Assembly: GCA_020137815.1 (NCBI GenBank)
Contig: CM035359.1
Location: 682,001 to 746,000, forward strand
Source of the DNA: Hormiphora californensis
Lineage: Eukaryota > Animalia > Ctenophora
Length of the DNA: 64,000 nucleotides
Reading direction: 5' to 3'
Every line of letters begins with the position of its first letter. Position 1 is the first letter of the stretch. Under the pieces are notes generated by a model. The model was not told the DNA's origin and did not search any database. It was given only the letters and a program-made list of their open reading frames with translations. Both the position numbers and the translations under genes were made by a program. Of the stretch, positions 537 through 64,000 are shown piece by piece.

Positions 537-3500
537 CTACTACTACGTTCACTGAGTCATGTGACACTCTGTAACCATCCTTTAGATAGTTCCTAGCTGA
601 ACAGTTAAACACCCTCTCACTGGCGTACTGGACACTTGTTATGGTCAGGGTGGAGATCACTGCTGTGGTATTGTCACCAATCACTGGAGGGGGGGGGGGT
701 AGTTAGTTATGTAGCTCTAATACAGTTAGTTACCTATATGGGGAAATATCCACGCAATTAGGAGGGGCGGAACAAATCAGAAGTAGGTCAACAAGATACA
801 CAACAGTCTAAGTAAGTCTTTTTACTCACCCACGTTTTCCATCCGAATATCAATATTCTTGTTGTTCACCAGATACCCGTTACTAGCCCACTCAATAACA
901 TCTGAAAAACACAGGGAGTTTATTACAAAACAAGGAAACCTGTTACTTGATTTAGTCGGCGAAGTGTTGTGAAGTTGTTGTTACTGCCCTTTCAGCTAGA
1001 TTTACCTTTCAATGTGTTGACAAGAGAACAATGACTAAACTAGAGCCACATGTGTGTGATTCAATAAGTCACACACAATTTAACATGTTAGACACATGTG
1101 AGTGGTGATAGTGTAGAACCAACAGCTACAGTTGTATTGGGACAATGTGATTGTTTCTTTGGATACATTAGGGCTCCACTACAATATCTTGAGTCCAGTG
1201 GTAGAATGATGACATTCAAGAATATTATTGTATGTGAGTGTTTGAGATAGTGGGGGAGTGTTTGAGATAGTATTCTAGACATAGTGTTACATTAAAGGAC
1301 GTAGTGCGAGAAAGTGTGTCAACACACACAGGTGTGAAATATGTGGGGGGGGGGGGGGCGGAGGACATGGCAGTATTACACACGCACACATCTGTCTGTC
1401 AGTCTGTAGTGTTGGTCTGTCCGTTTGTCTGTCTATAGTGTTAGTCCACTAAAAGTAATACCTGGTAGCGGTTCCCCAACACCCCATACCCCACCCAATA
1501 CATTCCCAAAGTGTAACAAATACCTGGTAGTGGCTCCCCTGCTGCGGAGCACTGTAGAACAAGAGGTTTCCCATAAACACCAGTCAACAGTCTGGCCTTG
1601 GCTTGTACCTCCACCGGTGAAACTGAGAGAGAGAATGGGATACAAAGATGGGCAAAACAATATTTTATAAGCAGCCACCCAATTTATCAGCACCCCCCCC
1701 CCCCAATTTAAATCAGGGTCAGACTGTAGAACATACCATATTTGGTCACATAACATACCATATTTGGTCACAATGACCCTGGTATCAGTATACACGTTAT
1801 CTTCGTATCTGTTACTGGAAGTACAAGAGTAGTTTCCCCCGTTCTGGGGACCCACGTCATACAACGTTAATACAGACATGATGTCCTCTCCATACGATAC
1901 CGTCTCTATATCTTCTGTTATTGTCTGTAATGGGAGGGAAATTGGTATCGAAGACACCTCCTACTCTGTTTAGCTCAGGTCGGCGGGCGACCTTCGCGCG
2001 CGCGCGCGCGCTGGCAAGGGGTAACTTCGTAACCAAGGAGGGAAATTGGATCATAAACAGTAAACAGAGGTCCTAAACTTGTTCTAATTATTAGTTTAAT
2101 TGTTATTAGTGCAGTGAGGAGTAAACCTAAATTCACAATGTGGAGAGAGTGATTGAACTAAATTCAGCGCTCTTCTCTCCAGCCCCATTGCTAGTTTTAA
2201 TGCATGCTTGTACGTGTGTGTGTGTAGTACACAACGTTGTAGTAGGGAATTACCGAAATTACCATTAATTATCTCTTGCTATCTCTCTCTCTCTCTTTTT
2301 TTTCTTCTCTCTCTCTGTCTCTCTCTCTGTCTCTCTCTCTGTCTCTGTCTCTCTCTCTCTCTCTCTCTCTCTCTCTCTCTCTCTCTCTCTCTCTCTCTCT
2401 CTCTCTCTCTCTCTCTCTCTTCACGTGCTCATTCCAGTTCTACAGTTAATATATTTCTATTTCTAGGCCTCATACTAATAATGCAATCATAATATGATGA
2501 AGACAGTTAGATACAATGAACAGAATATATAGATGATGAAAAGAAAAGGAGCATATTTTATTTATTGTTTATTGTATATTATAATTAGTACTGGAATAGC
2601 GTAACAAATGTGTCCTGAATTATTGACACTCTAAATTACCATATAATTTCATGGCTACATTTCGACCGTCATATTACAGTGTTATATAAGTGCTGCATAT
2701 TGGTATAAAAGTTAATAAGTCGAAGCAATGGTCGACAATTTCTTATTTTAGAAGGAATTCTGCTGAAAAGTAATAACATTACTTTTACATAGTACGTTGT
2801 TAATTGTAAGGTACATATATTGGAGTTTCAATGGGGATTTGGATCGATAGGTCTACTAAGGTGAGTTACTCCCAAGCTATCGCTATGATAGTGTGTATGA
2901 TACAATCATCTGAAATTCTGATATCATCATGGGTCCTACACGAAAATCAAACACCATTATATATGGGCATATATCACGTGACGTGACACACAGCACCATA
3001 TATGGGCATGACGCATTACAGACACCATATATGGGCATCTCACCTCATTGTTTAGCATCCAAGTTATCTCTGAGGCGGGAGGATAACCAGTTGCATTACA
3101 TGTTATCCTCTCTGTTAACCCTGACTCTAGCTCCGCTCTGTAGGGAGCCCCAATCTCAATGGGTGATACTGAGAGAGAGAGGGGGGTGTTAGAAACTGGG
3201 AGGGGTATCATGTGGATATTAATCAGAGTTTCATGGTGCAGCAGATAAATTTGGGATATGAGGAGGATTATATGTGGTAGAGGATATGTGGAGGATAGTG
3301 TGTGTGTTCTGGCAATATTTCGTGTCCCACACACCCCATTGCAGCAGCTGTACAGCTCAAAATGTGTATTTTTCTTCTCAAGGAGTCACTCTCCCAATCT
3401 AGAACTCTCTAGCTTACTCTCCTGCTTGTGTGTGTGACAGTTATGCACTACAGGAGCTGTATAACAGCTGCATATAATACAGGGTGTCCCACTGCAGCTG

Positions 3501-64000: not shown

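Follow-up and report, generated by a model that had tools for sequence, protein, structure and literature searches.

In a 64,000-nt stretch of the genome of the ctenophore Hormiphora californensis (G000:C10:682001-746000; hereafter, the window, meaning the whole stretch analysed), tandem arrays concentrate at the ends of introns and, at a number of junctions, run across the splice site itself. The explanation that we favor, and consider probable though not strongly so, is that minisatellites are generated in place and accumulate at intron ends, where the amplifying process would copy whatever lies at the exon borders, above all the splice signals. The window holds two host genes: a multi-immunoglobulin-domain gene on the minus strand (gene 1) and a FAM135-like gene on the plus strand (gene 2). 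An earlier note on this DNA had described, beside the splice sites of both genes, unrelated short repeats resembling transcription factor (TF) sites, namely the X-box of RFX, the CArG box of SRF, the E-box, the cAMP response element (CRE) and homeodomain-type TAATTA arrays, and every motif coordinate it listed holds on re-count. The published genome of this species is 110 Mb long, in 44 scaffolds; tandem repeats make up 13% of it, and indel heterozygosity is raised in introns (PMC8527503). The genome-wide counts given here were taken over a 110.69-Mb assembly of 45 contigs. Tandem Repeats Finder returned 166 rows for the window, which merge into 90 arrays covering 20.4% of it, against about 8% in 200 kb sampled from elsewhere in the genome.

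The placement of these arrays was compared with a permutation model, in which the arrays of each intron were re-placed randomly inside the same intron (30 introns, 4,000 permutations). An array lies within 10 nt of the acceptor in 12 of the 30 introns, whereas 1.84 would be expected and none of the permutations reaches 12; within 20 nt of the acceptor the figures are 14 introns against 3.5, and within 20 nt of the donor, eight against 3.5 (p ~0.01). Array coverage accordingly rises toward the acceptor, from 15% beyond 400 nt to 43% at 101-200 nt and 37-56% in the last 100 nt of the intron, while on the donor side it reaches 22-34% compared with 20%. This crowding at junctions is a property of tandem arrays generally, including those without any TF-like word, and the effect is strongest for pyrimidine-rich and branch-point-like arrays at the 3' ends of introns. 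Most of the junction-adjacent arrays are CT-rich, C-rich or branch-point-like, and an X-box half-site is present in only about 10 of 73 minisatellites. The observation that TF-like motifs stand beside splice sites is thus sound as far as it goes, with seven of eight X-box loci near a junction, but the association belongs to tandem arrays as a class.

Upstream of 33 acceptors, the sense word TAAC is found 40 times, where intron interiors would predict 11; its antisense counterpart GTTA, at ten times against 7.6, does not differ, and the tract is C-rich. Branch-point-like sense words are found in 11 of the 22 acceptor-near arrays compared with 11 of the remaining 65, with a mean sense pyrimidine content of 0.63 in the former and 0.51 in the others. 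The acceptor-side arrays are therefore largely multiplied 3' splice signals in sense orientation, consisting of TAGTAAC, TACTAAC, CTAAC and CTAAT words plus C/T tracts. An equivalent proposal for the 5' splice site, that array units generally carry one, was rejected (five arrays against four to five for control words). The TAATTA runs, which had been taken for homeodomain-type sites, turn out to be splice words as well: they are extensions either of GTAATT-type donors (24242, 25131, 29053, 63237) or of CTAAT/TTAAC branch-point words before acceptors (13042, 15821, 30799, 63545). As a separate observation, the branch-point region at the 33 acceptors appears unusually strict and resembles that of yeast, with TAGTAAC, TACTAAC or CTAAC followed by a C-rich tract, and around one third of the donors read GTAATT or GTAAC instead of GTAAGT.

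Eleven arrays of the window straddle a splice junction, six at donors (1737, 9801, 12914, 25131, 27750, 35564) and five at acceptors (6219, 15821, 24705, 35461, 63545). At the donors, the unit consists of the last 8-36 nt of the exon and the 5' splice site; at the acceptors, of a branch point or pyrimidine tract, the AG and the first 5-42 nt of the exon. Which copy of the duplicated splice site is spliced can be approached through P0011, an ortholog of gene 2, since its alignment across E6/E7, E8/E9, E10/E11, E14/E15 and E18/E19 is colinear only with the exon-proximal copy; we infer from these five junctions that this copy would be the one in use. Sequencing runs sharing words with the window were metagenomic or metatranscriptomic, containing about 5% of them, and over 23100-29099 reads aligned only as poly-G, at 25240-25272 and without joints. 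The array over the exon 7 acceptor gives weak extra high-scoring segment pairs to P0011 at 24412, 24474 and 24525. Its 63-nt repeat (24388-24746) is divisible by three and keeps the frame open, and the use of an upstream acceptor copy would insert 21-residue repeats.

Regarding the origin of the arrays, their units were matched against 245 kb from other loci, and no match was found besides GA/CT repeats. The units are locus-specific and were therefore made in place rather than derived from one transposon; those containing exon ends must have arisen in place. Several arrays show 94-100% identity among their copies, and in two of them the unit spans the distance between two copies of ACCATG or GTTACCA, one of which lies inside the exon, which looks like a signature of slippage between pre-existing short repeats. 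The possibility that all motif instances belong to a single dispersed transposable element was discarded, given that the flanks beyond the motif are not common to the instances: the units of the window are locus-specific, and the upstream flanks of 20 genome-wide GTTACCATGGTAAC sites are mutually unrelated. Also discarded was a general amplification of palindromes, since palindromes of 10-12 nt are enriched no more than mirror or direct repeats.

According to the favored explanation, short direct repeats tens of bases apart would seed slippage or unequal exchange in a repeat-prone genome, and arrays would build up over the final ~200 nt of introns, with a weaker concentration directly past the donor. 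Many of them would start within the exon, so that a donor-side unit joins the end of the exon to the 5' splice site and an acceptor-side unit combines branch point, pyrimidine tract and AG with the first bases of the exon. Selection would tolerate straddling duplications of this kind, since the splice-site copy nearest the exon is left intact and is the one in use. Of the earlier suggestion that a mutational process amplifies bound motifs next to exons, the amplification itself stands, in the form of 11 straddling, locus-specific arrays with copies 94-100% identical, but there is no sign that the amplified sequence must be protein-bound. The eight X-box loci of the window would be, as part of this explanation, in-situ arrays drawn into the general intron-end process.

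For boundary-straddling repeats there is one human precedent, the variable number tandem repeat (VNTR) in intron 7 of F7. This minisatellite has units of 37 bp, the first of them lying across the border between exon 7 and intron 7, and, going by the title of the paper, its 5' splice-site choice follows oriented scanning (PMC1557585). Both cases share a repeat lying over the exon-intron boundary, with identical 5' splice sites recurring downstream, and at all 11 junctions of the window the unit spans the boundary and repeats the splice site. In contrast to the one human locus, six donor-straddling and five acceptor-straddling arrays occur here within 64 kb, the splice-site use would follow from colinearity, and on the acceptor side the duplications take in the branch point, the pyrimidine tract, the AG and the first bases of the exon. 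Should the window be representative, growth and turnover of comb-jelly introns would take place chiefly at their ends, through tandem duplications that copy, again and again, splice sites, branch points and even the tips of exons, and the genome would represent a natural experiment on how the spliceosome chooses among identical neighboring splice sites and on how introns lengthen.

Among the TF-like words, that of the X-box is in true excess. GTTRCCATRGHAAC gives 17 strand-hits in the window where 0.01 would be expected (at 9643, 12607, 12806, 12849, 21661, 27920, 28000 and 34927-35023), and CCATGGTAAC gives 45 matches at eight loci against 0.13; seven of these eight independent loci begin or end no more than ~50 nt from a junction, as read from the exon maps. 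Genome-wide, GTTACCATGGTAAC occurs 1,161 times compared with once for its control, and GTTNCCATGGNAAC forms 2,453 perfect sites compared with seven (350-fold), with position 4 being nearly always A or G. The direct dimer GGTAACCATGGTAAC matches the palindrome in abundance (1,979 against two for the control). A repeat family of ~315 bp, with at least 598 candidate copies, carries many GTTGCCATGGCAAC sites, often in head-to-tail runs of three to six. CCATGG(T/C)AAC is thus really over-represented in this genome, where it is spread by the ~315-bp repeat, as single sites, which are probably genuine RFX sites, and in minisatellites. The ~315-bp repeat was looked for in the window and is absent from it. 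A representative copy (L029:1400-1714 = G000:C1:748360-748674) opens with the hairpin GCGCACCCATTGGGTGCGC and contains a perfect GTTGCCATGGCAAC and, after it, GGTAACTATGGGGAC, which also resembles an X-box; identity among copies is 86-95%.

This excess gives rise to the first alternative, which we regard as unlikely: that the X-box arrays, possibly together with the CArG arrays, function as homotypic clusters of RFX (or SRF) sites, serving as intronic enhancers, chromatin elements or pausing elements. Minisatellite expansion would then be a cheap route to many sites, and their place at exon borders would either serve exon definition or simply reflect where arrays are able to grow. The RFX consensus is GTNRCC N0-3 RGYAAC, with GTTRCY as the monomer site, and RFX is up-regulated in ctenophore ciliated cells (bioRxiv 10.1101/2022.11.11.515474). 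The variation of GTTNCCATGGNAAC is exactly that tolerated by this consensus, all 14 positions agreeing and varying only at R/Y positions; the sequence in the window is identical to the optimal palindrome, and it shows no strand bias and local clustering of its arrays. Besides, the genome encodes MADS DNA-binding domains and two RFX DNA-binding domains (PF02257 at C9:7676057, 119.7 bits, and C4:1101173, 92.8 bits, both above the curated cut-off), and two alpha-tubulin genes in tandem have a perfect X-box, GTTGCCATGGTAAC, between them, ~400 bp upstream of the start of one (L035:1-3012 = G000:C1:1173642-1176655), which makes it a plausible RFX target. RFX-type binding may have some role in the X-box subset of the window. 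However, classical X-boxes are single and located in the promoters of ciliary genes, whereas all instances in the window are intronic, mostly tandem, and hosted by an immunoglobulin-repeat gene and a FAM135-like gene without known ciliary role; here, the direct arrangement is about as frequent as the inverted one, and the word also travels in the ~315-bp family. Arrays without a TF-like word show the same junction association, several arrays are young, with copies 94-100% identical, and in two of them part of the "motif" was copied from coding sequence.

CCATATATGG, TCACGTGA and TTAATTAA occur four, ten and 15 times in the window, against 0.07, 0.54 and 2.3 expected. The CArG+E-box copies at 2959-3038, 5642-5663 and 6020-6087 have a common unit of ~31 nt, at three sites within 3.1 kb and in both orientations, and so are one local repeat family instead of an independent convergence; CC(A/T)6GG does not stand above chance as independent sites, and at a fourth CArG-like site (1736/1758) the sequence comes from the last codons of an exon together with the donor G. 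Over the whole genome, CCATATATGGGCAT is found 520+529 times against 0, and 170 of these occurrences form the perfect 18-bp CArG palindrome ATGCCCATATATGGGCAT, which sits in a repeat of at least 307 bp with at least 182 candidate copies, 97-100% identical. A derivation of the window CArG copies from that repeat was rejected, only a 14-nt core being in common and the repeat being absent from the window. This young, dispersed repeat (L012:5974-6280 = G000:C1:3120166-3120472) may be a short interspersed nuclear element, its left end resembling a transfer RNA (tRNA) T-arm (GGTTCAAGCCC). E-boxes also appear to travel with repeats, as seven out of ten are located in them: five in two copies of one dispersed repeat, with GTCACGTGATCGTCACGTGAT pairs at 22182-22260 and 31465-31484, and two, as ATCACGTGAT, in both arms of an inverted repeat pair (56045 and 57591). 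The CRE word TGACGTCA is found twice against 0.57 expected, a number reached by 9 of 100 shuffles, and is at chance level. The ctenophore chromatin-loop anchor bound by CTEP1 and CTEP2, which is GC-rich with two CpGs (PMC12221973), was considered as the identity of the motif and dismissed as a different sequence.

Most of the resemblance to TF sites comes down to coincidence, as for the CRE pair, or to one local 31-nt repeat, as for the CArG+E-box copies, but the X-box word is in true excess. The further idea that DNA-binding proteins bracket exons is not borne out: the junction effect is common to all arrays, and beyond the CArG+E-box family and the chance-level CRE, the TAATTA runs are splice words. 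Scans for factor sites in this genome are doubly confounded, by splice words that mimic such sites (RGYAAC resembles TAGTAAC; TAATTA resembles GTAATT and CTAAT) and by repeat families that bear perfect palindromes. The RFX half-site RGYAAC coincides with both the TAGTAAC and the GGTAAC words. The 350-fold excess of perfect X-boxes, to which three unrelated routes contribute, offers a concrete starting point for testable work on RFX biology in an animal with giant cilia.

Several points weigh against in-place generation as a complete account. With respect to the host gene, the X-box word favors neither strand, GTTACCATGG being on the sense strand at three loci and CCATGGTAAC at four, and therefore RNA-level mimicry of splice signals cannot explain it. 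GGTAAC-bearing arrays are clustered locally, representing 10 of 73 here compared with 2 of 102 in other sampled DNA, and perfect palindrome loci are about 20 times denser in the window than on contig 1; this clustering points to a DNA-level or gene-specific cause that in-place generation leaves unexplained. The hexamer GGTAAC shows no enrichment outside arrays, and yet CCAT precedes 10 of its 111 copies there (9%), so the extended RFX-type word would be favored in itself. For the same reason, the simpler notion that GGTAAC is just common as a splice word was rejected, only CCATGGTAAC being enriched. The straddling arrays, in turn, are around threefold more numerous than expected (11 against ~3.4 under a uniform duplication model, a back-of-envelope figure from array density and unit length), and passive tolerance by itself might be too little to account for this excess. 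Finally, the junction mapping covers one 64-kb window, and the exon borders of gene 1 are predictions, made from open reading frames (ORFs) and splice-site scoring.

The local clustering is also what would be expected if the X-box core were a mobile or recombination-prone seed, copied nearby through transposition over short distances, through template switching during repair or because protein-bound DNA is a hotspot of breaks, and then expanded with its local flanks, thus taking the part of the common core in classical minisatellites. We consider this second alternative improbable as well. The same core of up to 16 nt recurs in different units, clustered within 5-60 kb, in the window and likewise on contig 1 (for example at 5.439-5.443 Mb and at 10.405-10.419 Mb), and the unequal share of GGTAAC-bearing arrays (10/73 against 2/102) and the three CArG+E-box sites within 3.1 kb, in both orientations, would fit such copying. 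So would the two repeat families bearing perfect X-box and CArG palindromes, while a miniature inverted-repeat transposable element (MITE)-like insertion shows that these introns do receive inserts. Nevertheless, terminal repeats, target-site duplications and common flanks were not found around the arrays of the window, from which the ~315-bp element and the CArG-bearing repeat are both absent, and units with exon ends in them can only have arisen in place. The MITE-like or foldback element in question (580 bp, 28138-28717) is inserted into an X-box array and is bounded by terminal inverted repeats of 21 nt (GGTGGGCGGACTCTAGTGCTA); its interior contains numerous inverted copies of TTTAGATAAAGAGTCCGC, and a stretch of (CCTAAC)8 resembling telomeric repeats lies at 28367-28414.

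A variant in which RFX-bound X-box DNA acts as a hotspot or selected seed of tandem duplication at exon borders, so that the "core" of the minisatellites is a TF site, seems to us quite doubtful. If true, factor binding, or the DNA breaks that it provokes, might be linked through amplification near junctions to exon definition or to the growth of introns, and junction-straddling duplication could also be a general route of intron expansion. Classical hypervariable minisatellite families have a common core sequence, and the otherwise unrelated arrays described here likewise have a common core of 10-16 nt; unlike in those families, this core is a TF consensus and the arrays are located at splice junctions. 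A further parallel is offered by placozoan Mutator elements, whose terminal repeats carry a chromatin-loop anchor motif (PMC12221973). Similarly, two repeat families of the ctenophore genome each bear a perfect palindromic factor-type site, even though, contrary to the placozoan case, the motif instances of the window are not copies of these repeats.

The last alternative, chance plus selection by the reader, supposes that short repeat-filled introns put any repeat near an exon and that some of ~90 arrays (merged from 166 rows in 64 kb) will resemble factor sites, and although TF-like words do occur in a minority of arrays only and palindromes as a class are not in excess, it is very improbable and is rejected for array placement (12 introns against 1.84, 0/4,000) and for the X-box word (350 times the control genome-wide; 45 against 0.13), remaining valid for the CRE pair.

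Table 1. Arrays, motif-bearing repeats and gene models of the window. Positions are those of the window; ^ marks the exon-intron border; x, number of copies.
Feature	Positions	Strand	Remarks
22-nt x2 array over donor	1730..1772	-	CArG-like CCAAATATGG = exon-end codons + G of the GT donor
C-rich, CTAAC-bearing array over acceptor of exon 6099-6219	6186..6438	-	acceptor duplicated
43-nt x4.1 X-box array over donor 9801	9643..9827	-	unit: last 27 nt of exon, GTAAGT, TACCATGGT
Single perfect X-box (12607) and 34-nt x6.4 array over donor 12914	12607..12923	-	unit holds exon end GTTACCACTA + GTAAGT
36-nt x2 TAATTA/CTAAT array over acceptor of exon 15711-15821	15817..15888	-	
63-nt x6 array over exon 7 acceptor	24388..24746	+	unit: TACTAAC, pyrimidine tract, CAG, first 45 nt of exon
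19-nt x2.2 array over exon 8 donor, ATTACAAG^GTAATTAGTTA	25124..25165	+	a TAATTA site of the earlier note
43-nt x2.8 array over exon 10 donor, ..AAAGAG^GTAACTAGGGGTAACT	27724..27843	+	
38-nt x2.9 array over exon 15 acceptor	35381..35490	+	pyrimidine tract, CAG, first 22 nt of exon
36-nt x2.2 array over exon 15 donor, ..GGGAAA^GTAAGTAAC	35536..35613	+	100% identity
54-nt x3.9 CTAATTAACTAAC array over exon 19 acceptor	63312..63563	+	holds CCCCTCAG + first 18 nt of exon
25-nt x6.9 array, sense-strand CTAAC/TAGTAAC words	16773..16953	-	11 nt upstream of acceptor
37/149-nt array, TAGTAAC + C-rich modules	23687..24124	+	stops 7 nt short of exon 6 acceptor
C/T tract (CTCT)n	27428..27642	+	stops 3 nt short of exon 10 acceptor
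TAATTA/TTAAC array	30744..30791	+	stops 7 nt short of exon 14 acceptor
Intron 16, 143 nt	61086..61228	+	opens with GTAACCATGGTAACC, ~10 GTAAC words, closes GTTACAG
23-nt x7.4 array, GTGTATTGTAACCATGGTAACCA	61343..61512	+	16 nt past exon 17 donor; copies near-identical
23-nt x12.5 array, TAGTAAC + C-rich	63693..63979	+	begins 8 nt past exon 19 donor
TAGCAACCAGGA x77 array, RGYAAC half-site word	35618..36547	+	kin arrays at 43554-44220, 47439-48079
Single perfect X-box GTTGCCATGGTAAC	21661..21674		43 nt upstream of exon 3 acceptor (21717)
C-rich X-box array (GTTACCATGGTACCCCC + variants)	27920..28951	+	reaches 9 nt before exon 11 acceptor; interrupted by 28138-28717 insertion
32-nt x4.1 array with GTTACCATAGCAAC	34920..35049	+	411 nt upstream of exon 15 acceptor; sole X-box-like array off junctions
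CArG+E-box minisatellite copies	2959..3038		begin 6 nt past donor of exon 3044-3168; inverted relative to 6020-6087 copy
Lone copy of GTCACGTGATGCCCATATATGG (CArG+E-box unit)	5642..5663		
31-nt x2.2 CArG+E-box array	6020..6087		fills 102-nt intron between exons 5896-5996 and 6099-6219
23-nt x2 duplication with both TGACGTCA copies	25941..25985	+	stops 5 nt short of exon 9 acceptor
Gene 1, multi-immunoglobulin-domain	505..17913	-	15 predicted exons, each Ig domain on two exons
Gene 1 predicted exons	537-683, 1524-1622, 1737-1924, 3044-3168, 4607-4714, 5257-5393, 5896-5996, 6099-6219	-	
Gene 1 predicted exons, continued	8481-8641, 9801-9904, 11920-12009, 12914-13042, 15711-15821, 16664-16761, 17767-17865	-	
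Gene 2, FAM135-like with DUF676 serine esterase domain	20579..63685 and beyond	+	at least 19 exons
Intron 15 of gene 2, 25 kb	35565-60918	+	houses nested GPCR-like genes + LINE

The assignment of gene 1 to the immunoglobulin (Ig) class is consistent with sub-threshold Pfam matches to Ig_3/I-set half-domains, which in 8 of 10 segments fall in turn on the first and the second half of the domain, and its minus-strand orientation with the distribution of GTAAGT in the region (17 on the minus strand against two on the plus strand). For gene 2, a Pfam match to DUF676 in one exon served to retrieve the 824-aa ortholog P0011, which comes from short contigs of up to 4.4 kb; the other useful match, among many of low complexity, was P0120. 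The exon map was then obtained by tblastn with this protein, reading the splice sites at every border, and P0011 is colinear with gene 2, exon after exon, over residues 1-780. The exons of both genes were compared singly, by reference.

Other elements are found within the introns of the two genes. In intron 15 of gene 2, two paralogs resembling G protein-coupled receptors (GPCR-like), with an NPxxY-type C-terminal half, lie in antisense orientation (36885-37566 and 44725-45458, minus strand); they belong to a segmental duplication of ~7.8 kb, and each adjoins TAGCAACCAGGA arrays. The same intron contains a long interspersed nuclear element (LINE; 48334-54630) with reverse-transcriptase and endonuclease domains, whose ORFs (49555-52515 and 52470-53813) are on the minus strand and which forms the center of a 99% identical inverted duplication with arms of ~640 nt (48334-48970 and 53993-54630). 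Intron 9 of gene 2 bears a 339-residue open frame without a Pfam match (26113-27129, plus strand), with a motif that may be of the kind seen in retroelement proteins. In gene 1, a tRNA gene (5718-5790, plus strand; Rfam, 34.4 bits) lies inside an intron, between two copies of an exon-like piece (GGTCCGTGCACCRCACA at 5600-5618 and 5687-5709) and adjoining the CArG+E-box unit.

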